Assembly: GCF_039654945.1 (NCBI RefSeq)
Contig: NW_027361763.1
Location: forward strand, 7,006,001-7,070,000
DNA length: 64,000 bases
From: Dendrobates tinctorius
Taxonomy: Eukaryota
Reading direction: 5' to 3'
The notes below the pieces were generated by a model that was given only the letters and a program-made list of their open reading frames with translations, did no database searches and was not told the DNA's origin. Made by a program: the position numbers and the translations under genes. Below, one piece after another: positions 17,757 to 38,964 of the stretch (position 1 is the stretch's first letter; each line of letters opens with the position of its first letter).

Positions 17757-17809
<53 letters not shown>

Positions 17810-17830
17810 GTTTATATATATATATATATA
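17757..17830. repeat. (TA)n microsatellite
   Basis: Seen directly; further (TA)n at 17078-17093 and 30436-30470. Confidence 0.95.
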
Positions 17831-17933
17831 AATAGTGTTGAGCATTCCGATACTTAGTTCCGATACTTTTTTCATATCGAATACCGGAATCGGAAGTTCC
17901 CATAATGCTAGGAGCCCGCTCGATTTGATTCAG

Positions 17934-18044
17934 CCAATGGGGATCCTCAGAAGTGTGGGCATATCCTGTTAGGCATGTAGGCATGTTAACTACTGGCATG
18001 GCTGTGATTGGCTGCTGAAATGATGTCATGATGCACTATAAAAA
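17934..18044 (+). promoter_or_regulatory. Putative Pol II promoter of the hAT transposase
   Basis: CCAAT (17934), inverted CCAAT (ATTGG, 18007) and TATAAAAA (18037), pointing toward the transposase. Motif evidence only. Confidence 0.5.
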
Positions 18045-19050
18045 GCGCTGCAGCCACCATTTCTGGTCACTCTGCTGTGAATTCAGTTAGGGACAGGCTG
18101 CTGTTGAAGACTGTGAGGGACAGTTAGAAATAGCGATTCTAAAAACAATATTGTGCTTTATCCAGGCTACATAAACCACCACTGTAGCTTGTTTTTCCCT
18201 AGCAGCGCTGTTTTCACAGCTGTCTGCAAGGGCTGTGTGAGTGCAGACCCACGCTGTGTAGTGTGTCCTGCAGGCACGTCTGCTTGTAGGCCGGCCAGCG
18301 TGTGTCTCTGCCTCATACACATTTTTCTTTTATTGCTGCTTTTTTTTTCTCCTGTATAGTGTGCTTCCATACGTATCCATATACGTTGGTTGCAAACACT
18401 AAAGGAGTGGACAGCGGAGCCTTTCAGCAGCCTTTCAGTGCTATAGCCCATTTCTCTGCACTGTTTTTGGCTGTCTGATAGGTCTCTCTGTGTGTGAGTG
18501 CAGCTCACGTTGCAGTGAGTTCTACAGCCACCGCTAGCTGTAGTCCGCTCAGCGTGCGTCACTGCCTCATACATAGTCCTTTTTTTGCAGCAAATTTAGC
18601 CAGATTTTTGCTCCTATATTAGTGTGCTTCCAACCGCATCCATTGTCATTGGTTGGTTGCAAACACTATATAGGATTAGATAGAGGAGCCTTTTTGCTGG
18701 CTTGTGCCCTTCAGGGCCAGCCAGGCTAGTATCACCCTATTTTTTGGAGCCTCATCAATTGCATTGTAGGTTAGCTTCCTGCATTGTAATCGCTCCAAAA
18801 AGTTTGTGATACTATAGCTTTCAAACTTTGGTCACATCCTTTCCTTTCCCCCCACCCAAAAAAAAAGGAAATAAAGTTCACCAAACACTCCACTTTACAG
18901 TTGTCTAGGCCACATTAGATCATATTAAAGTGTAGTACACACACTCTTAGCCAAATTAGTGTTTCTTATACTGGTTAGCAGGTGTTCAGGAATAAGAACA
19001 CTAAGCCACCACTTTTTTACTTTTCTGCCTATCTTTATCAGTCTACCAAG

Positions 19051-22000
19051 ATGAAGAAGGCAGGGAGTAAGGCACGTGGTCGTGGCCGTGGAGTTTCAGC
19101 AGGGAGAGGACGGGGGGATTCAGCAGGGAGAGGACGTGGGGATTCGGTATCTGCTGTGGCCACCAGTGACCCGGCATCCCCCACTTTTACCAGGCAACAG
19201 TCCTTCATGCGCAGCTTTGTAGGACCTCGCCGTACCCCACTGCTGCGTGACGAACAAATTGAAGCCGTTGTCGGATGGATGGCAGCTAACGCATCCACTT
19301 CAATGACTTCCGCATCCTCCCAAGGCCAGAGCACTGAAGAGCAACCATCTGTCTCTTCACCACCTGCCAAATTGCCCAGGCAGTCTGAGAGCCCTGGACA
19401 GGAGCCATCTCAATCTTTACTTCTGTTCTCAGAATCTGTTGGCTTGGAAAGAGGTGGCCAGCCAAGCAGCATTCTAGAGCATGAAGAAGAGGGAGTATGC
19501 AGTGATGTGCAACTGCTTTGTCCCTCTGAATCTGAAGAGGCGGGTGGGCCAGTGCCTATGGTCAGCACACCTCAGTATGCATCAGATGATGATGAGACTC
19601 AGTTGCCAATTTCTGGTGCGTACTGTGCTGGCGAGACAACCCAGGACCAGCCGGTGCTTGAAGAGGGGAGTGGAGATGATGAGGTCCTTGACCCGTCATG
19701 GCGTCAGCCACAGGAAGGTGGTGGGAGCAGCTCTGAGGAAGAGATTCCCCGAACGGCCAAAAGAGGAGGGAGAGGGCGGGGGCAGACTTGGTTGCCTGTA
19801 GCCTCCACTTTGGCACCCATGAGGAGAAATCCTCTTCCAAAACACAAAACGGGCGCTCCCAGGACTTGCAGTGCGTGGTCTTTTTTTGACACAGTTGCAG
19901 ATGACATTTGCTTTGTCAAATGCAAGCTGTGTCATCAGAAAGTGAAACGAGACAAAAAATGTGACCAACCTCAATACCACAAATATGTGGAAACATGTGC
20001 GTACCAAGCACGAGGTGGAGTTACACAGACACACTGAAGATGTAGGCCAACCTTCAGCAGCACCTACCACCTCTTCAGCTCGTGTTGGGGCCTCTTCCTC
20101 CAGCTCACACAGAGCTGGTTCGGCTTCCTCACTGGAACGCCATGGAAGAACCACTGCCACTGTTGTCCAGAGACCCAGTGAAATTCCACCCACTGAACCA
20201 CGTTCGCAGTCATCAGCACCCTCCCAGGCCACTCACCAGCAATCGGTAGCACAGGCATGGGAGAAAAAGCGGCCATACTCGGCAAACCATCCCCGAGCAC
20301 TGGCTCTGAATGCCGGCATTGCCAAACTACTGGCCCTTGAGATGCTGTCATTCAGGCTGGTGGAGACTGACACATTCCGGAACTTTATGGCAGTTCCACA
20401 ATACAATGTGCCCAGCTGCTTTTATTTCAGCAGGCAAGCTGTCCCTGCCCTGCAAAAGCATGTGGAGGGAAAAATTAAAAGTGCGCTACTAAATGCCGTC
20501 AGTAGCAAGGTCCACCTGACCACCGATGCGTGGACCAGTAGCCATGGACAGGGACGATACCTTTCCCTCACTGCCCATTGGGTCAATGTTGTGGAGCCGG
20601 GTACAGATCTGGAGAGTGGCTCTGTACGTATTCTGCCAACTCCAAGGATTGCAGGAATGCAGTCTGTACATATTGAGTCCTCCTCCTACTCTAGTTCCTC
20701 GGAATCAGCACTGCGTGAGCCTGTTAGGCCAGATATGAGCACAGGTGTGGCCAAACGTCAACAGGCCATCCTTAAATTAATTTCTTTGGGGAATCGGAGC
20801 CACACAGCACCGGAGCTCTGGAATGCCATCAAGCAGGAGAGCGATGTGTGGTTTGTGCTAGCGAATCTCCAGCCAGGTTTGGTAGTGAGTGACAATGGCC
20901 AAAATCTAGTGGCAGCTCTGGGCCTAGGCAACCTCACTCACATACCATGTCTGGCACACGTGCTCAATTTGGTCGTGCAGAGCTTTCTGAGGGACTATCC
21001 GGATCTTGATGCACTGCTGCACAAGGTTCGCCTAGAGTGTGCTCACTTGCGGCGTTCCAGCATGGCAAGATCGCGCATTGCATCTCTGCAACGCCGATTC
21101 CGCCTGCCAGAACATCGCATCATATGTGACCTCCCCACCAGGTGGAATTCAACGTTACATATGTTGGAGCGGTTGTGTGAGCAGCAGGCAGCAGTAATGG
21201 AGTACCAGCTGCATCAGGCGCAAACAAGTCGCACTGTGCGCCGGACACACTTCACCACCACTGAGTGGGCCACTATGAGGGACATCTGCCAAGTTTTGCG
21301 TGCCTTCGATGACTCCACGCGGATGGCCAGTGCAGATGATGCACTAATCAGCATGACTGTCCCCCTCATCTGTCTGCTTCAAAAAACCTTACAAGCACTA
21401 AGTGAAGAGGTTTTTGAAGAGGTCGAGGATGAGCAGTCAGAAATGCCATCTGTTTCTGGCAAGTCTGCGCAACGTGCTTCCACACAAAGGCCAAGGCAGG
21501 GGACACTTAGTGAGGAGGATGACGAGGAGTCAATGGAGGAGGAGGAACACATCTCTCCAGAGGAGGGAGGTACACAAGGCTCTAGTAGTCAGTGTGTACA
21601 GCGAGGGTGGGGTGATGCTGAGCAGGCAGAGATGCTGCCTCAAGCTGGGGACAGCGTTTCCGGTCCAGTTGGCAGTCTGCAGCACATGGTTGATTTCATG
21701 CTGCAGTGCTTGTTAAATGACCGCCGCATCGCCAACATTCTCCACACGGCTGATTATTGGGTGTACACCCTCCTAGATCCTCGCTACCAGGACAACTTAC
21801 AAAGCCTCATACCACAGTTGAACCGGGAGCGAAAAATGCGGGAGTACCAAGAAACACTTGTGCAGGCCATCATGTTCTCCATTCCCCCCACAAGTGTTGC
21901 TGGTAGTGCTTTTCAAAGCAGCCATGTGGGTAGAGGCAGTGGAGGAAGCTCTGCACAAAGAGGTAGCAGAGGCAGTGCCGCAGGACAAGGCAAGGCCAGT

Positions 22001-22384
22001 ATGGCCCAAATGTGGAAAAGTTTTGTGGGACCGCCACAAACGGCTACACCATCACAGATGGCTCCAGTCAGCAGGAGGCAACGTTTCCGTCAGATGGTGA
22101 CAGACTACTTGTCGTGCCCTGTTAGTGTTCTCCCAGACGGCTCTTCCCCGTTCAAGTATTGGGACTCTAAGCTGGATACATGGCCAGAGCTTAGCCAGTA
22201 TGCATTGGAGGTGCTGGCTTGCCCTGCTGCCAGTGTATTATCGGAACGTGTCTTTAGTGCTGCAGGTGGTGTGGTAACAGACCGTCGCACGCGACTATCC
22301 GCCGATAATGTTGACCGGCTTACTTTTGTGAAAATGAACAAGGCCTGGATCTCACCTGAATTTGCCAGTCCTCTTCCAGAATAA
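19051..22384 (+). pseudogene. hAT transposase (ZBED4/ZBED6-like: BED finger, DDE core, dimerisation domain), 1110 aa if one frameshift is repaired
   Basis: BED finger SAWSFF...CKLC...NLNTTNMWKHVRTKH is split by one extra A in the A6 run at 19954-19959. Intact motifs HLTTDAW (D), VSDNG (D), CLAH (CxxH), TRWNS and SERVFS (E); N-terminal RG repeats. Confidence 0.92.
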
Positions 22385-22432
22385 ATAATTGGCTGGCAAC
22401 AGGATCCAGGTCTCCTGTTGTGTTCATGTTTC
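22380..22432 (+). terminator. Putative polyadenylation signal overlapping the transposase stop codon
   Basis: AATAAA at 22380-22385 includes the TAA stop; GT-rich TGTTGTGTTCATGTTT follows about 30 nt downstream. Confidence 0.45.
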
Positions 22433-22439
22433 TATGACC

Positions 22440-25400
22440 TGAACTTTATTTCCTGGGCTACAGCAACGCCCGTTGTTGATCAGAAGTGCTGTCCGCACAG
22501 ACAAAACACTCGCTCATGTGTAAGTGGGGTTCGGTAACGTCAGCTGATCCCCTGCTGTGTGTACGGCAAACTCTCCTGCTGCCTACAACTTCTGACTACC
22601 TCTGATTTAATATGTTCTCTGATTTGCCCTCTGTCTCCACTCTGTTTTGAGTATTTCCTCCGGCCTACAACACCGCCTCTTTCTGCTCTCAAGTGCCGTC
22701 TGTACAATCCACACTTGATCCTGTGGTACCTGGGTCCTGTAACATCTGCTCATCTCCAGAGTTGAGCACGGCAATGTCTCCTACTTTGTCTACATTCCCA
22801 CTACTTGTAGTGGAAATGTGGACAGAGCAGGAGACATTGCCTGACTCACCTCTAGGGAGAAGCTGCTGTTACAGAACCCCAGTAACACAGGAACAAGTGT
22901 GGGTTGTGCAGACAGCATTTCAGAGCAGCAACTGACGTGGTTGGAAGCCAGTGGAAATACTCGAAACAGAGTGGAGACAGAGGCCTAATTGGATTACGTT
23001 GACAGTTAGTAGTAGTCTAGAAACAATCGCAAACTGCCACCAATTAGGCCTCGGCCTACTACCTGATTTTCCCTGGGCTCCGACACCGCCAGTTGGTGCT
23101 CAGAAGTGCTGTCCGCACAGACAAAACACTCGATCATGTGTAAGTGGGGTTCGGTAACGTCAGCTGATCCCCTGCTGTGTGTATGGCAAAGTGTCCTGCT
23201 CCCTCCACAGTCAAACAACCTCAGATTTACACCTGGCTCCAAGTAGGCCTCGGCCTACTACCTCATTTTCCCTGGGCTCCGACAACGCCAGTTGGTGCTC
23301 GGAAGTGCTGTCCGCACAGACAAAACACTCGCTCATGTGTAAGTGGGGTTCGGTAACGTCAGCTGATCCCCTGCTGTGTGGAGGGCAAAGTGTCCTGCTC
23401 CCTCCAAAGTCAAAATACCTCAGCTTTACACCGGGCTCCTAGTAGGCCTCGGCCTGCACCCTGGTTCTCCCTGGGCTCCAACAACGCTAGTTGGTGCTCG
23501 GAAGTGCTGTCCACACAGAAAAACACACTCGTTCATGTGAAAGTGGGGTTCAGTAACGTCAGCTGCTCCCCTGCTGTGTGGAGGGCAAACTGCTGCTGCC
23601 TCCAAATTGTAACTACTTCAGATTTAAACATTCTCTGATTTGGCCTCTGTCTCCACTCTGTCTCTAGTATTTCCCCTAACCTCCAACACCGCCAGTTCCT
23701 GCTCACAGTCGCCGTCCACGAATTCCACACGTGTTCCTGTGTTACTGGGGTTCTGTAACATCAGCAGATCCCCCAATATGTGTCCGCCACTGTCTCCTGC
23801 GCTGTCCACCTTCCCACTGCAAGCGGTGGGAAGGTGGACAGAGCAGGAGACAGTGGCAGACACACATCAGGGGATCTGCTGACATTACAGAATCCCAGTA
23901 ACACAGCAACACGTGTGGATTGGGCAGACGGCTACTGTACGCATAAACTGGCGGTGTTGGTAGTCACGTGAAATCCTGGAAACAGAGTGGAGACAGATGC
24001 CTAATTGGAGCACGTTGACAGTCTGTTGTAGCCTACAAACACTGTTAAACTGCCACCAAGTAGGCCTCGGCCTGCACCCTGGTTCTCCCTGGGCTCCAAC
24101 AATGCTAGTTGGTGCTCAGAAGTGCTGTCCACACAGAAAAACACACTCGGTCATGTGAAAGTGGGGGTCAGTAACGTCAGCTGATCCCCTGCTGTGTGGA
24201 GGGCAAAGTGTCCTGCTCCCTCCAAAGTCAAAATACCTCTGCTTTACACCTCGCACCTAGTAGGCCTCGGCCTGCACCATGATTGTCCCTGGGTTCCAAC
24301 AATGCTAGTTGGTGCTCGGAAGTGCTGTCCACACAGAAAAACACACTCGTTCATGTGAAAGTGGGGTCAGTAACGTCAGCTGCTCCCCTGCTGTGTGGAG
24401 GGCAAACTGCTGCTGCCTCCAAATTGTAACTACTTCAGATTTAAACATTCTCTGATTTGGCCTCTGTCTCCACTCTGTCTCTAGTATTTCCCCTGACCTC
24501 CAACACCGCCAGTTCCTGCTCACAGTTGCCGTCCACGCATTCCACACGTGTTCCTGTGCTACTGGGGTTCTGTTACGTCAGCAGATCCCCCAATATGTGT
24601 CCGCCACTGTCTCCTGCGCTGTCCACCTTCCCACTGCAAGCGGTGGGAATGTGGACAGAGCAGGAGACAGTGGCAGACACACATCAGGGGATCTGCTGAC
24701 ATTACAGAATCCCAGTAACACAGCAACACGTGTGGATTGGGCAGACGGCTACTGTACGCATAAACTGGCGGTGTTGGTAGTCACGTGAAATCCTGGAAAC
24801 AGAGTGGAGACAGATGCCTAATTGGAGCACGTTGACAGTCTGTTGTAGCCTACAAACAATCTAAAACTGCCACCAAGTAGGCCTCGGCCTGCACCCTGGT
24901 TCTCCCTGGGCTCCAACAATGCTAGTTGGTGCTCAGAAGTGCTGTCCACACAGAAAAACACACTCGTTCATGTGAAAGTGGGGGTCAGTAACGTCAGCTG
25001 ATCCCCTGCTGTGTGGAGGGCAAAGTGTCCTGCTTCCTCCAAAGTCAAAATACCTCAGCTTTACACCTGGCTCCTAGTAGGCCTCGGCCTGCACCCTGGT
25101 TCTCCCTGGGCTCCAACAACGCTAGTTGGTGCTTGGAAGTGCTGTCCACACAGAAAAATACACTCGTTCATGTGAAAGTGGGGTTCAGTAACGTCAGCTG
25201 ATCCCCTGCTGTGTGGAGGGCAAACTGCTACTGCCTCCAAATTCAAACAACGTCTTATCTTAAACTGCCTCCAAGTAGGCCTCAGCCTACAAAATGACTA
25301 TCCCTGGGCTCCAACATCGTCAGTTGTTGCTCGGAAGTGCCGTCCATACAGAAAAACACACTCGTTCATGTGAAAGTGGGGTTCAGTAACGTCAGCTGCT

Positions 25401-27492
25401 CCCCTGCTATGTGGAGGGCAAACTGCTGCTGCCTCCAAATTGTAACTACTTCAGATTTAAACATTCTCTGATTTGGCCTCTGTCTCCACTCTGTCTCTAG
25501 TATTTCCCCTGACCTCCAACACCGCCAGTTCCTGCTCACAGTTGCCGTCCACGCATTCCACACGTGTTCCTGTGTTACTGGGGTTCTGTTACGTCAGCAG
25601 ATCCCCCAATGTGTGTCCGCCACTGTCTCCTGCGCTGTCCACCTTCCCACTGCAAGTGGTGGGAATGTGGACAGAGCAGGAGACATTGGCAGACAAACAT
25701 CAGGGGATCTGCTGACATTACAGAACACCAGTAACACAGGAACACGTGTGGATTGGGCAGACGGCTACTGTACGCTTAAACTGGCGGTGTTTGTAGTCAC
25801 GTGAAATCCTGGAAACAGAGTGGAGATAGATGCCTAATTGGAGCACGTTGACAGTCTGTTGTAGCCTACAAACAATCAAAAACTGCCACCAAGTAGGCCT
25901 CGGCCTGCACCCTGGTTCTCCCTGGGCTCCAACAACGCTAGTTGGTGCTCGGAAGTGCTGTCCACACAGAAAAACACACTCGTTCATGTGAAAGTGGGGT
26001 TCGGTAACGTCAGCTGATCCCCTGCTGTGTGGAGGGCAAAGTGTCCTGCTCCCTCCCAAGTCAAAATACCTCTGCTTTAAACCTGGCTCCTTGTAGGCCT
26101 CGGCCTGCACCCTGGTTCTCCCTGGGCTCCAACAACGCTAGTTGGTGCTCGGAAGTGCTGTCCACACAGAAAAACACACTCGTTCATGTGAAAGTGGAGT
26201 TCAGTAACGTCAGCTGATCCCCTGCTGTGTGGAGGGCAAACTGCTACTGCCTCCAAATTCAAACAACGTCTTATCTTAAACTGCCTCCAAGTAGGCCTCA
26301 GCCTACAAAATGACTATCCCTGGGCTCCAACATCGTCAGTTGTTGCTCGGAAGTGCCGTCCATACAGAAAAACACACTCGTTCATGTGAAAGTGGGGTTC
26401 AGTAACGTCAGCTGCTCCCCTGCTGTGTGGAGCGCAAACTGCTGCTGCCTCCAAATTGTAACTACTTCAGATTTAAACATTCTCTGATTTGGCCTCTGTC
26501 TCCACTCTGTCTCTAGTATTTCCCCTGACCTCCAACACCGCCAGTTCCTGCTCACAGTTGCCGTCCACGCATTCCACATGTGTTCCTGTGTTACTGGGGT
26601 TCTGTTACGTCAGCAGATCCCCCAATGTGTGTCCGCCACTGTCTCCTGCGCTGTCCACCTTCCCACTGCAAGTGGTGGGAATGTGGACAGAGCAGGAGAC
26701 ATTGGCAGACAAACATCAGGGGATCTGCTGACATTACAGAACACCAGTAACACAGGAACACGTGTGGATTGGGCAGACGGCTACTGTACGCATAAACTGG
26801 TGGTGTTGGTAGTCACGTGAAATCCTGGAAACAGAGTGGAGACAGATGCCTAATTGGAGCACGTTGACAGTCTGTTGTAGCCTACAAACAATCTAAAACT
26901 GCCGCCAAGTAGGCCTCGGTCTGCACCCTGGTTCTCCCTGGGCTCCAACAACGCTAGTTGGTGCTCGGAAGTGCTGTCCACACAGAAAAACACACTCGTT
27001 CATGTGAAAGTGGGGGTCAGTAACGTCAGCTGATCCCCTGCTGTGTGGAGGGCAAAGTGTCCTGCTCCTTCCAAAGTCAAAATACCTCTGCTTTACACCT
27101 CGCTCCTAGTAGGCCTCGGCCTGCACCATGATTGTCCCTGGGTTCCAACAATGCTAGTTGGTGCTCGGAAGTGCTGTCCACACAGAAAAACACACTCGTT
27201 CATGTGAAAGTGGGGGTCAGTAACGTCAGCTGCTCCCCTGCTGTGTGGAGGGCAAACTGCTGCTGCCTCCAAATTGTAACTACTTCAGATTTAAACATTC
27301 TCTGATTTGGCCTCTGTCTCCACTCTGTCTCTAGTATTTCCCCTGACCTCCAACACCGCCAGTTCCTGCTCACAGTAGCCGTCCACGCATTCCACACATG
27401 TTCCTGTGTTACTGGGGTTCTGTAACATCAGCAGATCCCCCAATATGTGTCCGCCACTGTCTCCTGCGCTGTCCACCTTCCCACTGCAAGCG
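22440..27492 (+). repeat. hAT cargo array 1: 199-bp units with ~360-bp fold-back cassettes, higher-order period 817 or 1016 bp
   Basis: GTAGGCCTCGGCCT recurs every 199-200 bp. Palindromic cassettes start at about 22620, 23640, 24457, 25473, 26489 and 27307 (last one half). Confidence 0.95.
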
Positions 27493-29315
27493 GGGTTCCA
27501 GCACGCCTGCTGTTTCCGGGTAGTGTCAAGGTCACTATGCCACCAATCCGTTGTCCTGTCGTCTTGCGGCCGGGTTAGCCGACTCTACGGTGCCTGCAGT
27601 TTAGGTGACTCCTATGTGGGCTGCGGGAACTGGCACTGAAGGCTGGATCCGTAGTGCCAATGGGACATGGACCCCCTGTAGGACTGTGGGTTTCGGTAAC
27701 TGCGGCCGGCTTGCGGCCTGGCTACTTTGCTTTCAATGGGTACCTTCTGCTACCCACCCGGGTTCCAGCACTGTCTGCTGGTTCTCGCCAGAGCCTTTGG
27801 CCTAGGTGCCTCCATCTCGGTATCCGAGGTCCAGCACCGTCAGCTGGTCCTTGGTAGTGCTTTCTAGCACAGGTACCTCCTGCCTAGTAACCGTGGTCCA
27901 GCACCGTCAGCTGTTCCTCGGTAGTGCCATTGGCTCTTGTAGCTTTTGATACCCATCTGGGTTCCAGCACCGTCAGCTGGTTCTCGGCAGTGTCTTTGGC
28001 ACGGGGACTCCCTGTTGCCCAGCCTGGTTCCAGCACGCCTGCTGTTTCCGGGTAGTGTCAAGGTCACTATGTCACCAATCCGTTGTCCTGTCGTCTTGCA
28101 GCTGGGTTAGCCGACTCTACGGTGCCTGCAGTTTAGGTGACTCCTATGTGGGCTGCGGGAACTGGCACTGAAGGCTGGATCTGTAGTGCCAATGGGACAT
28201 GGACCCCGTGTAGGACTGTGGGTTTCGGTAACTGCGGCCGGCTTGCGGCCTGGCTACTTTGCTTTCAATGGGTACCTTCTGCTACCCACCCGGGTTCCAA
28301 CACTGTCTGCTGGTTCTCACTAGAGCCTTTGGCCTAGGTGCCTCCATCTCGGTATCCGAGGTCCAGCACCGTCAGCTGGTCCTTGGTAGTGCTTTTTAGC
28401 ACAGGTACCTTCTGCTTAGTAACCGTGGTCCAGCACCGTCAGTTGGTCCTCGGTAGTGCCATTGGCTCTTGTTCCTTCTGCTACCCATCCGGGTGCCAGC
28501 ACTGTCTGCTGGTTCTCGCCACAGCCTTTGGCCTAGGTGCCTCCATCTCGGTATCCGAGGTCCAGCACCGTCAGCTGGTCCTTGGTAGTGCTTTTTAGCA
28601 CAGGTACCTTCTGCTTAGTAACCGTGGTCCAGCACCGTCAGTTGGTCCTCGGTAGTGCCATAGGCTCTTGTTCCTTCTGCTACCCATCCGGGTTCCAGCA
28701 CTGTCTGCTGGTTCTCGCCACAGCCTTTGGCCTAGGTGCCTCCATCTCGGTATCCGAGGTCCAGCACCGTCAGCTGGTCCTTGGTAGTGCTTTTTAGCAC
28801 AGGTACCTTCTGCTTAGTAACCGTGGTCCAGCATCGTCAGTTGGTCCTCGGTAGTGCCATTGGCTCTTGTTCCTTCTGCTACCCATCCGGGTGCCAGCAC
28901 TGTCTGCTGGTTCTCGCCACAGCCTTTGGCCTAGGTGCCTCCATCTCGGTATCCGAGGTCCAGCACCGTCAGCTGGTCCTTGGTAGTGTTTTTTAGCACA
29001 GGTACCTTCTGCTTAGTAACCGTGGTCCAGCACCATCAGTTGGTCCTCGGTAGTGCCATTGGCTCTTGTTCCTTCTGCTACCCATCTGGGTGCCAGCACT
29101 GTCTGCTGGTTCTCGCCACAGCCTTTGGCCTAGGTGCCTCCATCTCGGTATCCGAGGTCCAGCACCGTCAGCTGGTCCTTGGTAGTGGTTTCTAGCACAG
29201 GTACCTCCTGCATAGTAACCGGGGTCCAGCACCGTCAGCTGTTCCTCAGTAGTGCCATTGGCTATTGTTCCTTCTGCTGCCACTACGGGTTCCAGTACTG
29301 TCAGCTGGTTCTCGC
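27493..29315 (+). repeat. hAT cargo array 2: ~66-bp units in a 199-bp higher-order repeat, plus a 532-bp duplication
   Basis: CCAGCACCGTCAG(C/T)TGG about every 66 bp. Repeated ORF starts at 28338/28537/28736/28935/29134 (199 apart) and 27605/28137 (532 apart). Confidence 0.95.
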
Positions 29316-29317
29316 AT

Positions 29318-29880
29318 GAAGACAACCACCAAGATACAGAACAAAAGACAGAAGAACAAGATGCAGAAGAAGCAAAAGCAGAAGAACAGAAAGAAGAAGA
29401 ACATTAAGCATAAGACAAAAAATCAGCATAGAAGAAATCAAAATTATAAGCAGAAGAAGACTAAGCAGTAAATGGGGGTGAGTCCGTTCCTCCTCGTGGT
29501 GCCCCTGGAAAATGCCTGCTGCTGCAGGCCAAACTGAACGCGGACAAATCCTGTTGTAAATCTTTTGTGACAGGCAGAACGTAAGGTGTAATCTTATAAC
29601 TTTTATAGATAAGTACTACAGGAATGCCTGTCGCCATAAGAAAATGAAGAAAAAGAAGAATAGGAAGAAGATGAAGAAATAGCATATGAAAATTAATAAT
29701 AGCTGAATAAGAAGAATATGAAGAATGGAAAAAAAAAATAATGGGAAGAAGGTGAAGAAGAAGAAGATGAATAAGGTGAAGAAAAAGTTGATGAAAAAAA
29801 TGCTACTGCTGCGGATCATGAAGGAGAAAGTGTGGGAGAAGTACAAAAGTAGGTGAAGAGCATGGAAGTTGTGAAACATA
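29318..29880 (+). repeat. A/GAA-rich low-complexity tracts (29318-29472, 29636-29880) around a GC-richer island
   Basis: AAGAAG/AAGCAG runs on both sides of 29474-29635. Confidence 0.85.
29474..29545 (+). ncRNA. Candidate HDV-like self-cleaving ribozyme
   Basis: P1 GGGGGUG/UGCCCCU with G1-U wobble; P2 GUCCGU/GCGGAC; P3 CC/GG; L3 UCCUCGU; P1.1 CC/GG; P4 GCCUGC/GCAGGC; J4/2 CUGAA. Core CCUCCUCGUGGU versus HDV antigenomic CCUCCUCGCGGU. Confidence 0.7.
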
Positions 29881-30240
29881 CATATCTGACTAAATATAAA
29901 AAAGTTAACATAGTCAATATCTTTTTAACTCCAAACGTCTTGAAAAAAAAAATTGGAATTAATGCTATGCCATGTGATTTGAATAAACCATTATGCTTTT
30001 AATGTCTCCTCCACCTCCCACAATACATTCTACATGATTCTTATTTGTTTTCAATTATGTAGAATTAGCCAACAAGGAAATAAAGGGCTTTTTTTAATTC
30101 CGATACCGGAAGTCCCATTGACTTGAATGGGACTTCCGGTATCGGAATCGGCGATACCCGATATTTTTTTCGTATCGGGCGATACCATCCGATACAATAT
30201 TTTTGGGTATCGAACGGTATCGCTCAACACTATATATAAA

Positions 30241-30434
30241 ATAAAGGGAACACTTAAACAACAAAATCTAACTCCAAATCAGTCAAGCTTATGTGAAATC
30301 AACACTGATTGTGATTCAATTTCTCCTGCTGTTGTGCAAATGGTGTAAACAACAGTTAGAAATGATAGGAAGGTCACTAACGTCTATGTGTCTGCTCAGT
30401 AAGAGTTTCTAGGGTTCCCTTTATTTTTTGAGCA

Positions 30435-30436
<2 letters not shown>
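30241..30436. mobile_element. Short internally deleted Tc1 derivative
   Basis: Inverted ends ATAAAGGGAAC / GTTCCCTTTATTTTTTGAGCAG followed by TA repeats; left tip missing next to the hAT insertion. Confidence 0.6.
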
Positions 30437-30470
<34 letters not shown>

Positions 30471-30473
<3 letters not shown>

Positions 30474-31626
30474 AAGGCAACGCTCATCGAGTGTATTGGG
30501 GGACACTCACTTGGCAGCGCATTCACGTCACACAGGAACACTTTCCGTTAAACAGTCTATGTGGTTTATTGAACGGTATAAACTATATAAGGCAACACAA
30601 AGAAAGCAGTCTTATATCAGATAGATTAATCCTTAATGTCCATAGTAGAGCTTCGCTCTCTCAGTCGTGTGGCCACACAGGATGTGCCATGTCCAGTAAC
30701 AGGCTCTATTGCCTCACCACAGTTATTTCCCCCTGTCCGGGATTACCTCTTAGGAGCTTCTGCTCCAGACGCCGACTCTTGGTTTCTCCCGGGGAAGCGG
30801 CTGCACTGAGCTCACCATTCCGGACAGTGCTTTATTCAATAGGCCGCCTCACAGTTCCAGAACCACAGCCAGGCAGTGGCTTCCCCAAATGCAGTCCATC
30901 ACAGACTCTGCTCACACACGTGGCCTGTCCGGGTGCTATTCAGGAATCCGACCCTTCTTCCTGGGTCTCCCAACACCAGGACCAGGGCCTCAGCGGGTGC
31001 TATTCAGGACGTCCATCCCCTCCTGAGACCGTCCAACACTCACGCCTCACCGGGTGTTATTCAGGGATCCATCCCTACTCCCATGGACTCCCAACACACC
31101 GGCCTCACCAGGTCCAAGGTCGCAGCAGGTGCTATTCAGGAAGGCAGCACACCTTCCAACACCTAGACCTTCCAGAACCTTCCACCCTGAATCATTCAAG
31201 TACACACTCTCTCCCCATGTGACCAGACCTCAGGCACCTTATATGGTCCATAGCCACACCCAGAGGTGAGGTATGAATCACATGGTTATGACTTCACTAA
31301 AGGTCTTCTTTCACACAGTCACACACACACAGGCTTTATTCTGGACATTCAGACACACGCCCCTAGGTGGGTTTGTAGGTGAATGGTCCCACCTATCTCA
31401 CCAAGTCACTTGGAAGCTGGAAGCTTTCCCTGATACACTGCAGCAAACCCTTAGCAGTACCTCTGCTGAGCAACACATGTTCCAGCTTCCATCACAAGTC
31501 ACCCACACTTGTGATACATATCAGCCATTCACAACCCTGCCAGTCAACATTTTCCCTACTACAATGAAGGAACGCCTGCATGCATGTCCCATACAGCGCC
31601 CCCTAGCTGTCACAGGGGTCACTGCA
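30471..31626 (-). mobile_element. Long (1156-bp) LTR variant related to 16308-17064
   Basis: TGTAAGG...CACTGCA termini; shares the family's terminal blocks (CAGCGCCCCCTAGC, TTATATGGTCCATAGCCAC); abuts (TA)n. Confidence 0.7.
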
Positions 31627-32946
<1,320 letters not shown>

Positions 32947-32949
32947 TAT

Positions 32950-33352
32950 GTCTTTTTACATCTGAATTTGCTCCTCAGACCTTGTGGGGGCATCACAACA
33001 CAGAACCAAACCCCAATCAGAGGACAATAAAACTTTCACACTACTTACAGTATCTATGAACTGTTCCAATATTGATGGCCACAACTGTTTATCCCTCTCC
33101 CATAATGATAGTTCTGCTTCACGTCACATGTCTTATCTATTGCATTATTTCTGTGCTGTGTTGTGTATAAATATGTGATTCTTCAGATTTTGTATTAGTC
33201 TATACCTGATGAAGAGACCTGACTAGTCTCGAAAACTTGCAATGTGTTACCATCTTTTCAGTTAGCCATTAAAAGGTATCAACCACTGAAGACTCTAAAT
33301 TCTACATATTTTTCTATCTACTGACTAACACGGCACAAAGATATATATATTT
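32950..33352 (+). mobile_element. Penelope-like element terminal-repeat (pLTR) fragment
   Basis: Carries a hammerhead core. Its 3' part (TTACCATCTTTTCAGTTAGCCATTAAAAGGTATCAACCACTG) recurs at 39277-39762 and 44143-44193. Left boundary approximate. Confidence 0.65.
33200..33245 (+). ncRNA. Minimal type I hammerhead ribozyme motif, probably decayed
   Basis: CUGAUGA (33206-33212), stem II GAGAC/GUCUC, GAAA (33231-33234). Stem I and the AAGCUU stem III palindrome seen in the 39730 copy are mutated here. Confidence 0.6.
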
Positions 33353-33977
33353 GCCTTATGAAAACCTTCTCAGAACCATTTACTAAAAAGGTGTCTTTCA
33401 GACAGTCCAGTAAATAGCCTATCTAATCAGCAAGTACCACACACAAGCATGAAATGCAATGATGAACAACCTCTGTCTAGTCATCTGCTTACAGATGCAA
33501 CTATATCTCCCTCCAAGGACTTCAAGTGTGTGAAGACCAAACCCGAGCAGCGGTAAAGCTGATAAAAATGACATAGTCTTTAAGAAAAGGAACCTACAAG
33601 AATGATAATAGGAGCATCTGAAATGTGAATTTGACCTGAGTGATTAATGACTACGTTCGATATTGGACATTTGCCCAGTTTAAAAGCACATTACTACCCC
33701 CCGTAGGCTAAACAATGTTCATCTAATTCCAGGATCAGTTATATCAGGACCATCGTAAAGACCCTTCAGCTCTTTATATTTTTCATACCCTACCTCTAAA
33801 TACTATTCATTCTAGTATTGCTCATAATACAATTCCCTAATGGAATCGTATCTAACACTAGTCCACTGTAATTAATGAGAAATAATATTATAGGAATTAT
33901 CTTATCGATAATGGGAAGATGGAATTCAGACAATGATCCATCAAAGTCCACTCACGAATCGTAAGTTCCCATCCAGG

Positions 33978-34154
33978 CAGTGTCAGACTGAAGAACATTG
34001 GGCCCACCGGAGGATTTGATTCTGAGGGTCCATATTTCCTCCCTGCTGAAGAGCCCGAGAGCAACTACAAGGTTTGCACTATGAATTCTCTTGAAGGAGA
34101 AGCCAGGGCCCACTGGAGGATTCTCCGGTTCTCTGGTGGGCCAGTCCAACCCTG
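33978..34154. mobile_element. hAT MITE
   Basis: TIRs CAGTGTCAGACTG / CAGTCCAACCCTG; exact 8-bp TSD CATCCAGG. Confidence 0.85.
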
Positions 34155-34466
34155 CATCCAGGCCTTTGGTCTCCTAACCTGGTCTTATCAGCATCATGGG
34201 TGTATCTGGCTGTTGAGTTAGTGCCAGAAAACCCACTGCAATATGGAAATCATGGTCCATATTTGGACCCCAGAATTCAAGCTTCATCAGTGTTCACATT
34301 ACTTCTTAGCCTACTGTCAGTAGCTTACATCTAAAGTCCTGGAAATTGGGATCCGGACATATGCACTGACAAAGCCATTGTCTGTAATGATACAGTCGGA
34401 GTCACTATACACGTTCCAACATAATTTTAGGCCATGACTACAATATGTTGCCTACTGTGTCTTGAA

Positions 34467-34692
34467 TAGAGTTGAGCAAAATTTTCAGAATTTGTTTCCA
34501 ATTATGATCGGCGGCGAATATTGTTTTTGCAATATTCACCAAATGCCATTGGAGTCAATTGTAGTAGAAATTGCTGAATATGTTCGGAACCGATCATCAA
34601 ACATAAATTCAGCATGAATAGGGTACCAATTTGGCACAAATATGGCAAATTCACATTCAGCGACCGATTCCGAACATATTTGCTCAACTCTA
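34467..34692. mobile_element. hAT MITE
   Basis: TIRs TAGAGTTGAGCAAA / TTTGCTCAACTCTA; exact 8-bp TSD GTCTTGAA. Confidence 0.9.
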
Positions 34693-34863
34693 GTCTTGAA
34701 TGTCACCTGAACTGGGTGTATATGATAAAAATTATGTCCGACAGAGCACAGTGACTCCGACTGGATCATTATAGTCAATGGCCCAGTCAGCGCCAATGTC
34801 TCAATCCTGCTTTCCATAACTTTAGACAAAAGCCCCCAACAGAGCCACAAGATATAGGCTTAA

Positions 34864-35545
34864 TGTCACAATCCATTTTTGGATCGGTCAGATTCTGGAT
34901 TCTCTTTTATAAACTTTTTCCCTTTCAGGCCATCGGGGGTTAATGTCAGTTTTTGCCCCCACGGTGGCCGCTGGTGTTACTACAACTGTAGTTGGTAGTG
35001 TAGGCTGCTGGGTTCCCCCCCGGTGGCCGCTAGTGTTACTACATGCTTAGTTAGTCAGCAGGTGGTGACTACTCCACTTCCTTTTATAAGGCCACCTGGT
35101 GCTGCAGATCACTGTTGGTAATACTGGTCATTTGCTAACCAACCTTGGTGGACTGGACCTACCTGGTGCAGAGGGGGTTAAGCTTATCTGGAGCAGTGCA
35201 GTTGCTGCTGGATGCTGATCTGGTGCCTTACTCTGCTGCTTAGAGCATTGGCAGCAGATAAAGCTAAGTTTTGGTTTTTAGTTGCTTTAACCCCATGGTG
35301 TCTGTTTTGTCTTTCCTTTTGTGTTATTGGTGCAGTTCACTTTATTCCTTGTCTTACCTCCTGGGGAGGGGGTTGTGGATTTAGCTCAGGGCTAAACAGG
35401 AGATAGGGACGGGTCGGAGACTTGGGCCTCACTACCATCAAGTGTACCCCCAACTTAAGGAAAGTCAGGGCACCTCCTTAGCCTGAGGGGCAGTTGAGGG
35501 GCCCAGGTTCCACGTCTCCTGTTTTCCTCCTACTGCCCCGTGATA
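34864..35545 (+). mobile_element. Probable solo LTR (Gypsy-type)
   Basis: TGTCACA...CGTGATA termini, internal TTTTATAAGG TATA-like box, flanks TTAA/CTAA (imperfect 4-bp TSD). Confidence 0.55.
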
Positions 35546-36434
35546 CTAACCAAACCTTATAAAGTGAGTCCATCTAGTTTAATCCTACTTCACTCATAGT
35601 TATCAATCAGAAGAAAGCATTTCCCAGGAGGCAAAAGATTCCATCAGTATACTTTATTGATAGAAGGACTATGGAATTGTTGTACTGCCCACCGGAATGG
35701 GAAGAAGCATCTGAAATAATTTGGATGGTAATATTTTGGAAGGTACTATCTAAAACCAAAAATGCTACAAATTGGTTTCTTACCAGTGACTCATCAATGG
35801 AATCAGAGGAGCACTGGAAACAAATCTCAATGGTCCTTTCAACAAAAGGACAATTTTCCTGTCTGTACATCATCCAGTTGGGGAAGGATATTTGATATAA
35901 AAGTGTGACAAAGTCTGAATGAAAGGGCTGCATATCTTTGGGACATGAATATTCTAAAAAAAAAAAATCAATAATTTACAGTGGTGAGGAAATAATTATA
36001 AGCTTGGATTACGAAACAAAGCTGAGATATGGATCTTTTTGGCAGGATCAGTAGTTTCCCATATGGATAGAGTGAAAGGATGACCTAACTGGAGTAGGGA
36101 TTGTCCGGTCTAGATATACAAATCCGCAGTCACTCTACACGTGTGACATATGCTGCAAGGATTCTCTTGTGCAGACATCAGTAGCGGGTAATCATGTGAT
36201 TGCAAGTATGCAATTTGCATACGTTTGACTTGACCACATTACGACTAGACATGTCCAGCCTCTCTCAATTCACTTGTATTTAGTGAGGTCGTTGCACATC
36301 TAGTCGGCATGTGACCGCATGTCTGCAAATCGCATACTTGCAGTAACTTGCCCGCCTCCCAGTGTCGGCACCGGAGAATTGTGAGGATTCACAAGTCTGT
36401 AATCACACAGAGTGACTGCAAACTTACACCCTAA

Positions 36435-36597
36435 GGCCTCATTCACACATAGTTTTGTATTAATATTTGTCTGCCAAAACCAGGATTGTCTCCAAAACAC
36501 ACAACAGGTGACAATCTTAAAATTTATAGCTTTTCTCCGTAACTTGAACTCCTGGCTTTTGGCATACATGCTAAAACGCTGACATGTGAATGAGGCC
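36435..36597. mobile_element. Harbinger-type MITE inside an older Kolobok/T2-like MITE (~36097-36613)
   Basis: TIRs GGCCTCATTCACA / TGTGAATGAGGCC with TAA TSD; host ends AGGGATTGTCC / GGACAACCCCT. Confidence 0.85.
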
Positions 36598-36771
36598 TAA
36601 GGCGGGACAACCCCTATAAGTACCACATGCACATTAAATATGAGCGTTCACCAAAACGATCTCTTGGCTTCCCCCATGCATAGGAAAGTTTGGCATAATT
36701 TATTAAGAGAGGCATGAGGCTTTCATACCCAGACTAACAGCCAATCTTGCTGGCATACACATTAGTCTAAT

Positions 36772-37732
36772 GTAATAAAAAGAGAGAAGAGCCAGCACTG
36801 CCAGTGGTCAGAACGCATAACATGAGGTGCATATGCACATATCTTACTGCATTCAAAATGAGACATTTAGCAAAATATTGATCAATATATTGAGCCACCC
36901 CGCCACGCCAAGGCAATCTCATATGGGGGGTCCTACTCTACATTTTTATTATTCACTGTGCCATTGCGGCTTCCTAAATGTTTTAAAAGCAAGACCATAT
37001 CAAATGCAATCCATACCTGAAGCATATCTGCATCACTCCCGTGCAGCCAGATGGAGCAGGTGCAGATGAAGGCCAACCAGGTCTGAACACAGACATCTCA
37101 GGTTTGACCTCCACACACTGCCTGACCAGCAAACACAGATGAAGGGCAATGCAGGCTCAGACATGGATGCAGGAATAAAGCCTGGGGCAGGGCGGGGCTG
37201 CCGTGAGTGTGCACAGCAGCCTAGATCAATCACAATAAACACAGAAAAGATGGAGAACATGACCCAGCGTGCACGGCAACAGTGGTGGTCAGCCACAAAA
37301 CCAATTTGCAATAAAAAGAGAGAAGAGCTAGCATCCATGTCTGAGCCTGCATTGCCCTTCATCTGTGTTTGCTGGTCAGGCAGTGTGTGGAGGTCAAACC
37401 TGAGATGTCTGTGTTCAGACCTGGTTGGCCTTCATCTGCACCTGCTCCATCTGGCTGCACGGGAGTGATGCAGATATGCTTCAGGTATGGATTGCATTTG
37501 ATATGGTCTTGCTTTTAAAACATTTAGGAGGCCGCAATGGCACAGTGAATAAATAAAAATGTAGAGTAGGACCCCCCATATGAGATTGCCTTGGCGTGGC
37601 GGGGTGGCTCAATATATTGATCAATATTTTGCTAAATGTCTCATTTTGAATGCAGTAAGATATGTGCATATGCACCTCATGTTATGCGTTCTGACCACTG
37701 GCAGTGCTGGCTCTTCTCTTTTTTTATTGCAT
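36772..37732. mobile_element. Fold-back insertion: ~400-bp near-perfect inverted arms, 160-bp spacer, 13-bp direct repeats
   Basis: Arms 36772-37170 and 37331-37730; ATTAGTCTAATGT at 36761-36773 and 37733-37745; the spacer ends with a direct copy of the left-arm start. Confidence 0.85.
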
Positions 37733-38964
37733 ATTAGTCTAATGTGTATGGGGACCTGTAGTTGCATTGTAGGAACTTGCAGTTCTTGCAACCTAAAGAT
37801 TGTTAATGGTCTGACATTTAAAGAGTTTATCCAAACTTTTAAGAGAGCTGATTGGAAGCTTCAAATGGCTGAAAATAAAATAAGTGACTAATTCATTTGC
37901 TGGTCCAAACATTTTCATTTTTTTTTTTACAATTTTATGCTCCCCTCTTTCTTAAACGTGCATGTGAAAAGATTTGGTTTCTTCATGTGGCAAGGGTTTA
38001 CAGCGTCAATATTGACTTTTAGTATTGCTACTTCCAATAAATGGCTTTACAGTTTGAGAATTTTTTCAGGATGGTAGCGGTGATGTCAGTGAGGTTACCG
38101 GGGATCATCAGCTGTGAACTCCAGTGACCTTTCTCACATCAGCACTAGAAACGGCAAGAGCAGAGCTGGTGTTTAACATGGGACAAATGGATTGTCGTTG
38201 GATAGGTGAGGAATACAGTGTTTTATTATTTTTTATTTTACATTAATAAGTGGGGAGTGTATATTTCAAATAAAGGAGTCTGTGACTGCAAAAGGAGTTT
38301 CTGGTTTGCCATCTTATATCAAGTCATGTAGTAAGGCTCCTTAAAGGAAAAATATTGATTTTTAGAATTGCTGTCTCCAATAGATGGCATTTAAATTCCC
38401 TTCCCCTTCCTCTTTTAAGTAAATATTTGATTTTTTTAGATTCCCAGACTTATAAATGGCTTGTAAATCTACTTAGGGCAACTTATATCCTAGACCCCTA
38501 CTGTCATGATCCAGTCCAGTTTGTTTTCTGCTGTCTTCTCTTTGGACTGGTCATGCAGGGGCTAATCCCCTCTGCCTCGTTCTGGAGCTGGCTGGGCTAT
38601 TTCAGTCCTCTGCAGCCTGCGGGCCAGCTTCAACTATACTGCAAGTTTCCAGGCTAGTGCAATCCTGGAAACAATCCACGCTTCGATGGAACAGGACCGC
38701 TTCACGTGGCCGCTGAATCACCAAGCCTGGAAGAGTCGGGAAATGTTCCATCGGTTTTTGGTAAAAGTTAAAAACTCACGTAGGAAGCGTCAGAGGGAGG
38801 AAATTGAGGAAAATATGAGTGGTTGTACAGAGTTGTCAAAGGGAATGTAAGTGTGATAAGATTATCGGTAACACTGTCCAAATTGCTACAAAGGTAGAAA
38901 AAAAAATTATATTGCTTATATAGCATCATTACTGCACAACCTTGCTGATTTTACACATGCTGGC

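Follow-up and report, generated by a model that had tools for sequence, protein, structure and literature searches.

The window analysed here, a stretch of 64,000 nucleotides from Dendrobates tinctorius, holds a 12.4-kb hAT element (17833-30232). The reading that best accounts for the whole, and which is probably correct, is that it belongs to a hAT transposon family of dendrobatid frogs and is a dead copy, inactivated by a frameshift. The sequence suggests that its cargo is transposon-borne satellite DNA of a new variety, accompanied by a candidate ribozyme. The layout of the family is fixed: TIR, promoter-like region, BED/hAT transposase, satellite cargo, tract, block of ~160 nt, tract and TIR. 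The borders and the coding part of the window copy comprise the following features.

17825-17832, no strand: left target-site duplication (TSD) TATATAAA, identical to 30233-30240
17833-17843, + strand: 5' TIR TAGTGTTGAGC, 11 bp, perfect reverse complement of 30222-30232
17930-18050, + strand: putative promoter-like segment, defined by motifs read from the sequence
19051-19995, + strand: N-terminal part of the transposase with RG repeats and the first half of the BED finger (frame 1 ORF, translation)
19961-22384, + strand: C-terminal part of the transposase, 807 codons in frame 2, with the hAT dimerisation domain
22380-22385, + strand: AATAAA poly(A) signal, overlapping the transposase stop codon
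29901-30221, + strand: 3' subterminal region with CGATAC-type short repeats, read from the sequence
30222-30232, - strand: 3' TIR, perfect reverse complement of the 5' TIR
30233-30240, no strand: right TSD TATATAAA, identical to the left 8-bp TSD

Membership in the hAT group is given by the 8-bp TSD, the short TIRs and the C-terminal dimerisation domain of the transposase (PF05699, E = 1.9e-14, 53.7 bits versus a cut-off of 21.4). Contigs from four runs (kind of run unspecified) part from the window exactly behind 30232, at the end of the 3' TIR. The C-terminal part of the transposase is 78% identical to a R. variabilis protein. A single frameshift inside the BED finger, near 19955-19995, splits the coding sequence over two frames, and the alignment of frame 1 to proteins P0001, P0002 and P0052 stops at 19959-19995 (tblastn). 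The reading frame is not intact and the window copy is therefore non-autonomous. Pfam detected zf-BED in neither transposase piece, while the relatives do carry PF02892. The N-terminal part includes a 24-nt tandem repeat at 19095-19145. The original prediction of a TIR/TSD-bounded hAT element, encoding a BED-finger transposase with N-terminal RG repeats followed by AATAAA, is thus confirmed, apart from the split in the BED finger. Its promoter is not confirmed as such and amounts to motifs read from the sequence, namely CCAAT (17934-17938), inverted CCAAT (18007-18011) and the TATA motif TATAAAAA (18037-18044). A short relative in the same window keeps 88% of positions 17900-18015 (at 56928-57043) and 81% of the 3' subterminal region (at 56351-56672).

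Vertebrates have domesticated and fusion ZBED/hAT transposase genes. The database names of the relatives ('ZBED4-like' and 'ZBED6-like') and one R. variabilis gene model that joins KRAB exons to the transposase are reminiscent of them. Unlike such genes, the window copy ends in TIRs, is flanked by a TSD and has many mobile sister copies, and is a transposon rather than a host gene.

Four more copies from Ranitomeya variabilis and R. imitator (L001, L007, L008 and L009) preserve the order of parts of the window copy, with arrays, purine-rich tract, block and purine-rich tract in common, and keep 77-83% of the 3' subterminal region. L001 is a complete element of 11,974 bp with the same TIR as the window copy and its own TSD GTGACCAC. 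The cargo is therefore a family property rather than a late insertion confined to one copy, and it moves along with the element; the original prediction thus survives the first of its own refutation tests. In the more distant hAT relatives L003-L005 (~52% protein identity) no arrays adjoin the transposase and no conserved block was found, so the cargo is dispensable for hAT transposition.

The satellite cargo covers 22421-29316 (~6.9 kb) and is composed of these features.

22421-27490, + strand: array 1, ~200-bp units, direct and inverted, with a 1016-bp higher-order period (TRF, unit BLAST map)
22594-23017, no strand: palindrome 1, arms of 211 nt, 76% complementary (inverted-repeat search, as for the four below)
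23471-23501, + strand: example of the 31-nt hairpin core (nhmmer census)
23627-24016, no strand: palindrome 2, arms of 194 nt, 82% complementary
24444-24833, no strand: palindrome 3
25460-25849, no strand: palindrome 4
26476-26865, no strand: palindrome 5
27756-29316, + strand: array 2, 66-nt units in a 199-nt higher-order repeat (TRF periods 66 and 199)

Each unit of array 1 features at least two hairpin sub-repeats ~73 nt apart, and array 2 is broken up at 28022-28285 by a ~260-bp segment that is also present at 27490-27750. The two arrays had been described as dissimilar, but the nhmmer hairpin census shows that they are homologous, and all their units derive from a single ~66-nt unit, of which three make up ~200 nt. 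The five palindromes of ~390 bp exist because units are also inverted. Folded as RNA, palindrome 2 has a predicted energy of -280.6 kcal/mol (z = -29). Its centre gives sub-threshold matches to miRNA models on both strands. Array size and period vary among copies (200 bp in the window, ~160 bp in L002). The tandem array lies within the element, is carried to new sites and varies in copy number, as transposon-borne satellite DNA does; its growth, shrinkage and inversion would result from recombination and replication errors.

Internal tandem repeats are known in DNA transposons, as in Tetris of Drosophila virilis (PMC4079207) and the DTC84 MITE of Donax trunculus (PMC3879986). There too the repeats are enclosed by the TIRs, differ in number from copy to copy and can seed satellite DNA. 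In contrast to Tetris and DTC84, the carrier here is a coding hAT element of at least 12 kb, and the repeat has a hairpin core with two-sided changes and a sense-strand bias, besides the five long palindromes.

The ~7 kb of arrays had been proposed to be built from one covarying stem-loop, and this holds. About 61 instances of the hairpin core were found between 22452 and 29316, 55 on the + strand and 6 on the - strand. Of the cells of the stem, 86.8% are paired, where shuffles give 80.4% and slid partners 28-48%, and two-sided changes occur at 6 of the 11 pairs, matched by 0 of 500 shuffles; these shuffle controls overstate the significance because the array units are related by descent. Read on the + strand, the hairpins have 73 G·U against 8 A·C, and this strand is the more stable one in 31 of 36 distinct copies (mean -12.5 versus -8.8 kcal/mol; for the example at 23471-23501, -14.6 with z = -4.1 on + and -8.3 on -). 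The hairpin core is thus kept through two-sided base changes, with G·U tolerated and A·C not on the transposase-sense strand. Intra-hairpin repair of DNA palindromes could mimic such compensatory change, and G·T is the least harmful mismatch in DNA hairpins too.

Selection on the hairpin would act at the level of the element. The hairpin most likely works in a sense RNA read through past the weakly placed poly(A) signal, which every copy compared has ahead of its arrays and which is ATTAAA at the corresponding place in L001 and L002 (Ranitomeya). It might alternatively act in the displaced sense DNA strand during read-through transcription. The sense RNA would hold ~55 small hairpins and five long double-stranded ones, and would therefore also be a natural precursor of small RNAs. 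Mu killer of maize is a hairpin-RNA (inverted-repeat) small-RNA locus. Like loci of this type, the element has long near-perfect inverted repeats in transposon-derived sequence that would yield double-stranded RNA if transcribed; its arms, however, are array units and not transposase sequence.

Behind the arrays lies the segment between the two A-rich tracts that had been placed around an HDV-like fold. Both are present as purine-rich tracts.

29316-29473, + strand: purine-rich tract 1 (TRF, sequence)
29455-29610, + strand: conserved block (sliding identity, BLAST, alignments)
29474-29545, + strand: candidate HDV-like fold, 72 nt (descriptor scans, copy comparison)
29582-29596, + strand: small 6-bp hairpin (RNAalifold, five-copy alignment)
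29616-29880, + strand: purine-rich tract 2 (TRF, sequence)

Tract 1 is ~78-83% kept in L001, L007, L008 and L009, and tract 2 is 77-87% kept in the other copies. The block is the most conserved non-coding one of the element, with 88-93% identity to L001 in windows of 60 nt and 94.7% identity to L007, while the flanks reach 67-87%; it has 9 mismatches to L007 in 170 nt, where the flanking rate predicts ~27. It appears to be under constraint, of which a ribozyme, an overlapping splice-donor consensus or another structure may be the cause.

The candidate fold pairs positions 1-6 with 28-33 in P1 (including G1·U33), 9-13 with 68-72 in P2, 16-17 with 25-26 in P3, 19-20 with 34-35 in P1.1 and 41-46 with 51-56 in P4; L3 reads UCCUCGU. 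The strands of its P1 presumably resemble those of CPEB3. The active-site core is present: G+1 lies in a pair of the G·U or G-C kind, L3 contains U, YC and G, and P1.1 involves the two bases that follow P1. The HDV-like fold of the original prediction can thus be drawn at this site, but only if P3 has 2 bp next to a U·U mismatch and J4/2 is at least 6-10 nt long (up to 10-12 nt allowed), against the usual ~4. A strict HDV descriptor (P3 of 3 bp, J4/2 of about C-N-R-A) gave 0 matches, and the canonical lengths are absent. A topology-only descriptor that fits the candidate matched 37 sites in the window. With a core descriptor anchored in the literature, the candidate is the only match in the window, while at least one match occurs in 19.5% of shuffled windows; when P2, P4 and a J4/2 cytosine are added this figure is 7.5%. 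No HDV, CPEB3 or drz family of Rfam was found at E <= 10 in 14 kb or in 221 bases, which is weak evidence because the models are narrow. The candidate has an MFE z of 0.18.

Comparison of five copies revealed no two-sided changes in P1-P4. Uncompensated changes in P1, P3, L3, P4 and P2 are found in L008, as expected of a decayed copy. An apparent compensatory swap at 40/58 was contradicted by L008, L009 and one contig. Among the window, L001, L007 and the contigs, 4 of 6 substitution events fall at predicted unpaired positions. That this 72-nt fold inside the block is a ribozyme is a tentative proposal, more doubtful than not. HDV-like self-cleaving ribozymes are known from HDV, CPEB3, R2 and L1Tc (PMC3774820, PMC3185411, PMC13635239). 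The candidate shares with them the helix order that can be drawn, the G·U at the cut site, the positions of U, CC and G in L3 and the two-pair P1.1. It differs from them in the mismatched two-pair P3, in the longer J4/2 and in having neither Rfam match nor covariation. A full-text literature search found no paper connecting HDV-like ribozymes with cut-and-paste transposons.

The original prediction went further and held that the element makes a multivalent RNA of ~7 kb whose 3' end is set by the ribozyme. This is not established: the fold fits a relaxed definition only, contigs from four runs bridge the putative cut site 29473/29474, and 7 kb upstream there is a poly(A) signal. A long sense RNA with hairpins in array, cut at this site by a working HDV-like ribozyme to leave an upstream RNA ending in the purine/A-rich tract, would account for the core (G1·U33, P1 of 6-7 bp, two-pair P1.1, P2 of 5-6 bp, P4 of 6 bp, and U and G in L3 corresponding to HDV U20 and G25), for its place as the sole fitting site of the window within the most conserved non-coding block, for the 4 of 6 substitution events at unpaired positions and for the preference of the array hairpins for the same strand. 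Its irregularities have counterparts: a fast natural ribozyme tolerates the C:U pair seen in P1.1 of L001 (PMC13635239), and an active R2 ribozyme has a P3 mismatch with a short P1 (PMC3774820). Against these points stand the failure of the strict descriptor, the matches in shuffled windows, the Rfam result, the helices without compensatory change, the bridging contigs and the distant poly(A) signal, and we regard this reading as unlikely. It is similarly improbable that the hAT family encodes, in addition to its transposase, a dedicated sense non-coding RNA with ~55 selected hairpins and long double-stranded ones, freed by such a ribozyme behind an encoded purine/A-rich tail. It is very unlikely that a small retroelement headed by a ribozyme inserted in an ancestor of the hAT subfamily and that the block is its 5' end, with purine-rich tract 2 as its tail. 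HDV-like ribozymes usually head retroelements (PMC3774820), and the layout of ribozyme, ~140 nt and A-rich tract would suit one; yet no copy of the block outside the hAT context was found in the window or in ~240 kb of frog loci, depth over the block is not above that of the flanks in two runs, and no flanking duplication was seen.

The block could possibly be constrained for a reason other than cleavage, as a splice signal unit or another RNA or DNA structure, the HDV-like drawing being coincidental. A donor consensus G/GTGAGT (29477/29478) coincides with positions 4-10 of the candidate fold and overlaps P1; it is followed by a branch-like CTGAAC and a pyrimidine tract with AG at 29575, with enhancer-like purine-rich tracts on either side. 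Both the CTGAAC and the pyrimidine-AG segment hardly vary among the five copies, and the R. imitator gene model P0055 has an exon end exactly at this donor in L008. However, by our own estimate a G/GTRAGT match arises by chance in ~2% of 160-nt blocks, the gene model may be ab initio, the spliced joint 29477>29576 is absent among the contigs, and L008 approaches the donor consensus by G>A changes only, in a sequence that shows a general drift to A. The closing pair of the hairpin at 29582-29596 is U-A in the window; three copies have G-C instead and one has G·U, a sign of structure beyond the HDV-like part. Rather doubtful is the reading in which there is no working RNA at all, the arrays being passive satellite cargo whose palindromic core only helps it to be amplified and inverted as DNA and the block being kept by recent descent or gene conversion. 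Array length, period and orientation vary freely among copies, dyad symmetries are common in satellite DNAs, and the distant hAT relatives transpose without such cargo. The strong sense-strand wobble bias would be unexpected for a purely double-stranded DNA feature, though, and the mismatches of the block to L007 are too few for the rate of its flanks.

DNA transposons are thought to require ends and transposase alone. This family retained several kb of structured repeat in different species, together with a constrained non-coding block, and the strand signature is suggestive of RNA. If this RNA reading is true, cut-and-paste elements can bring along non-coding RNA machinery of their own; should the ribozyme cut, HDV-like ribozymes would extend from retroelements to DNA transposons and this would be the first self-cleaving ribozyme serving one. 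If the RNA reading is false, the family remains a clear example, among vertebrates, of satellite DNA and long palindromes arising within a transposon. This is relevant to how the very large genomes of poison frogs grow, to errors in their assembly and to their instability. hAT elements constitute 3.91% of the Dendrobates tinctorius assembly (PMC11152451).

The D. tinctorius window carries at 17833-30232 one copy of a transposon family that is real and partly unusual. The original prediction of a hAT element bounded by TIRs and TSDs stands: the 11-bp TIRs are flanked by matching 8-base TSDs and the coding part, formed by two overlapping frames (19051-19995 and 19961-22384), has a hAT C-terminal dimerisation domain in the second frame (E = 1.9e-14).

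17833-17843 and 30222-30232: TIR TAGTGTTGAGC, 11 bp, inverted
Directly outside both TIRs: TSD TATATAAA, 8 bases, the same on either side

Contigs of four public runs part from the window exactly behind 30232, as expected of a many-copy element ending there. The second frame shares 78% identity with a protein of Ranitomeya variabilis, and its close relatives are all from dendrobatid and other hyloid frogs. The expected BED-finger transposase with RG repeats is present with its frame broken within the BED finger, tblastn with three relatives as queries placing the frame switch near 19955-19995. As it reads, this copy cannot make transposase unless an assembly error lies behind the frameshift. 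The AATAAA predicted after the transposase is found at 22380-22385, where it overlaps the stop codon, and ATTAAA occupies the equivalent place in two Ranitomeya copies. A putative promoter is plausible from motifs read in the sequence: one CCAAT box, another in inverted orientation, and a TATA box. The untranslated stretch from the TATA box to the start of the transposase holds two similar segments of ~200 bp (18114-18318 and 18463-18695), each aligning with the same regions of the R. variabilis locus L001. A 5' UTR intron with its acceptor at ~18981 is likely.

The cargo downstream of the transposase is a trait of the transposon family. Its predicted co-occurrence with the transposase is borne out by L001, a complete element of 11,974 bp with its own TSD GTGACCAC and the same order as in the window: transposase, arrays, one 199-nt unit of array 2, both purine-rich tracts, the conserved block between them and the TIR. 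Likewise, three R. imitator loci (L007, L008 and L009) have array 2, tract 1, block, tract 2 and the 3' end in unchanged order. Loci L002 and L006 contain the 5' half with arrays, whose period is ~160 bp in L002. Arrays and block are absent from hAT relatives at ~52% protein identity: L003 (D. tinctorius), L004 (Phyllobates terribilis) and L005 (R. variabilis) show no arrays adjoining the transposase and no block. The window also holds a short non-autonomous relative (56351-57043, - strand), without transposase, arrays or conserved block, of which only the two ends are left; its 5' subterminal part is 88% identical to 17900-18015 and its 3' end 81% to 29905-30232.

By TRF, 23040-27296 has a period of ~200 bp, and 28275-29315 has two periods, 66 and 199 bp. 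In a BLAST search of the window with the ~200-bp unit, direct copies take turns with diverged ones that run forward or in reverse. Five palindromes arise from the reverse copies, their arms measuring 191-211 nt with 76-82% complementarity; one of these palindromes, folded as RNA, has a predicted energy of -280.6 kcal/mol (z = -29).

22761-22849, both strands: palindrome centre, sub-threshold miRNA matches
23781-23862, both strands: palindrome centre, sub-threshold miRNA matches
24593-24684, both strands: palindrome centre, sub-threshold miRNA matches
25609-25700, both strands: palindrome centre, sub-threshold miRNA matches
26625-26716, both strands: palindrome centre, sub-threshold miRNA matches

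These are the only Rfam matches. They score 37-53 bits with several unrelated models of miRNA precursors, on both strands and all below the gathering scores, and were rejected as miRNA family members and attributed to generic matching of perfect hairpins.

The arrays were predicted to be built from one stem-loop. A recurring hairpin core is indeed found. The two arrays are not dissimilar: array 1 and array 2 are homologous in sequence, beyond mere structural likeness. The core is 31 nt long; its 11 pairs surround a U·U mismatch that is conserved, and its loop has 7 nt. Its profile has 124 matches across the window, L001 and L002; of the 61 within the window, 55 lie on + and 6 on -. A second, weaker match lies ~73 nt downstream within each 200-bp unit, so the unit is itself composed of ~66-73-nt sub-repeats. 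Covariation of the stem-loop is supported: pairing is found in 86.8% of cells (42 distinct sequences, three loci), versus 80.4% in shuffles (0/500 reach the observed value) and 28-48% with slid partners, figures that count sequences and not events because the units are related by descent. Two-sided changes affect 6 of the 11 pairs (e.g. A-U/G-C/C-G at one and C-G/G-C at another), a compensation that DNA-palindrome repair could imitate. Non-Watson-Crick cells on the + strand are G·U (73) and A·C (8), and for 31 of the 36 distinct copies compared the stabler hairpin is that of the + strand (averages -12.5 vs -8.8 kcal/mol). Despite the caveats of descent and repair, this sense-strand bias argues for selection that would act on a sense RNA or on the displaced sense DNA strand.

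The block at 29455-29610 is 88-93% identical to L001 (60-nt windows) and 94.7% to L007, compared to 67-87% in its flanks, and is nearly variant-free in contigs of two organisms. Tandem repeats within DNA transposons are well known (PMC4079207, PMC3879986), and hAT elements account for 3.91% of the assembly of the dyeing poison frog (PMC11152451). The family is classed as a variant of transposon-borne satellite DNA in which the sense-strand hairpin core is conserved and the 3' block constrained.

Within this block an HDV-like ribozyme cutting at 29473/29474 was predicted.

29474-29545, + strand: HDV-like fold, 72 nt, with P1 at fold positions 1-6/28-33 (from G1·U33) and P2 at 9-13/68-72
29474-29545, + strand, continued: P3 at 16-17/25-26, L3 UCCUCGU, P1.1 at 19-20/34-35 and P4 at 41-46/51-56

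The fold can be drawn, and 29474 is the sole site in the window matching a core descriptor of published features (G at +1, L3 U-Y-C-N-C-G, Watson-Crick P1.1). This descriptor has 2 unrelated matches among the fetched loci and none on the sense strand of L003-L005; at least one match turns up in 19.5% of 600 shuffled windows, a share that falls to 7.5% once P2, P4 and a J4/2 cytosine are required as well. The prediction fails with the strict descriptor (3-bp P3, J4/2 of 3-5 nt with C-N-R-A), which gives zero matches, and with Rfam, where no ribozyme family is found at the gathering threshold in the whole window or at E <= 10 in 14 kb and 221 bases. The candidate fits only if P3 is allowed to be 2 bp and J4/2 to reach 10-12 nt, and a relaxed topology-only descriptor matches 37 sites in the window. 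Folding energies of the 72-nt and 181-nt stretches in a pseudoknot-free model are no better than those of shuffles (z = 0.18 and 0.89), and the exact 23-nt core pattern has 0 matches in metagenome contigs. HDV-like ribozymes are structurally flexible (PMC3774820, PMC13635239): in an active R2 ribozyme P3 contains a mismatch and P1 is 4 bp long (PMC3774820), and C:U or U:U occurs in the P1.1 of fast natural ribozymes (PMC13635239). Owing to this flexibility the deviations of the fold would be compatible with activity. That 29474-29545 forms a true HDV-like ribozyme is possible but doubtful, and the full model of an array RNA terminated by the ribozyme is improbable; the ribozyme and the RNA system resting on it are hypotheses.

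The better-kept copies have substitutions at fold positions 9, 34, 40, 47 and 58, most of them predicted unpaired and none compensatory. A change of A40-U58 to U40-A58, considered as a compensatory extension of P4, was rejected because both L008 and L009 show A/A at these positions and a contig shows G/A. L008 carries uncompensated changes in all fold helices and in the L3 guanine, a pattern as would be expected of a decayed copy. L009 keeps the core, with one P4 pair turned into a wobble. In a small hairpin just downstream of the fold (29582-29596) the closing pair is G-C, U-A or G·U.

Other readings of the block's conservation were considered. Its maintenance as a splice signal is a live rival to the ribozyme, since the 5' strand of P1 doubles as a G|GTGAGT splice-donor consensus, an exon of an R. 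imitator gene model ends exactly there, and a branch-like CTGAAC followed by a pyrimidine-AG stretch lies downstream of the donor. A coding role would fit the open frame that, in both L001 and L007, crosses tract 1 and continues into the block; it was rejected on 2 synonymous versus 3 non-synonymous differences, conservation ~60 nt beyond the stop and a stop at 29470 in the window copy. A nested retroelement is a rival of low probability, as no copy of the block is found outside the hAT context in the window and fetched loci.

In public gene models of R. imitator at L008 (10001-16040, P0055) and L009 (10001-18123, P0056), the open frame of tract 1, which is rich in lysine, serves as an exon. 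In P0055 this exon ends at the GT donor overlapping the start of the HDV-like fold and is spliced to DNA outside the element.

Logan contigs with this stretch span 29473/29474; whether they are RNA or DNA is a guess and they give neither strand nor ends. The joint 29477-29576 is not among the joints listed for these contigs of guessed kind, which have no bearing on expression or silence. In a full-text search, the five papers naming both HDV-like ribozymes and DNA transposons all deal with retrotransposons, mostly R2.

The L001 element sits inside KRAB zinc-finger gene models on both strands, and at L001 10001-16781 the public annotation joins KRAB-domain exons to the full transposase in P0001, a protein of 1296 aa with KRAB, BED and hAT domains. 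P0001 may correspond to a chimeric transcript made via a splice acceptor before the transposase exon. In L007, a pair of hAT-like ends, TAGGGTTGAGC and its complement, lies 18.3 kb apart (19646-37965) with the same 8-bp sequence, GTCATTAC, on either flank; the pair may mark a further hAT element of very large size in R. imitator. The hAT insertion in the window is at the edge of a (TA)n microsatellite (17757-17834 / 30233-30470). Directly to its right is a ~190-bp unit enclosed by inverted repeats of 17 nt (30238-30254 / 30411-30427, 94% complementary), with a second microsatellite, (TA)17, behind it; the unit looks like a small TA-flanked MITE.
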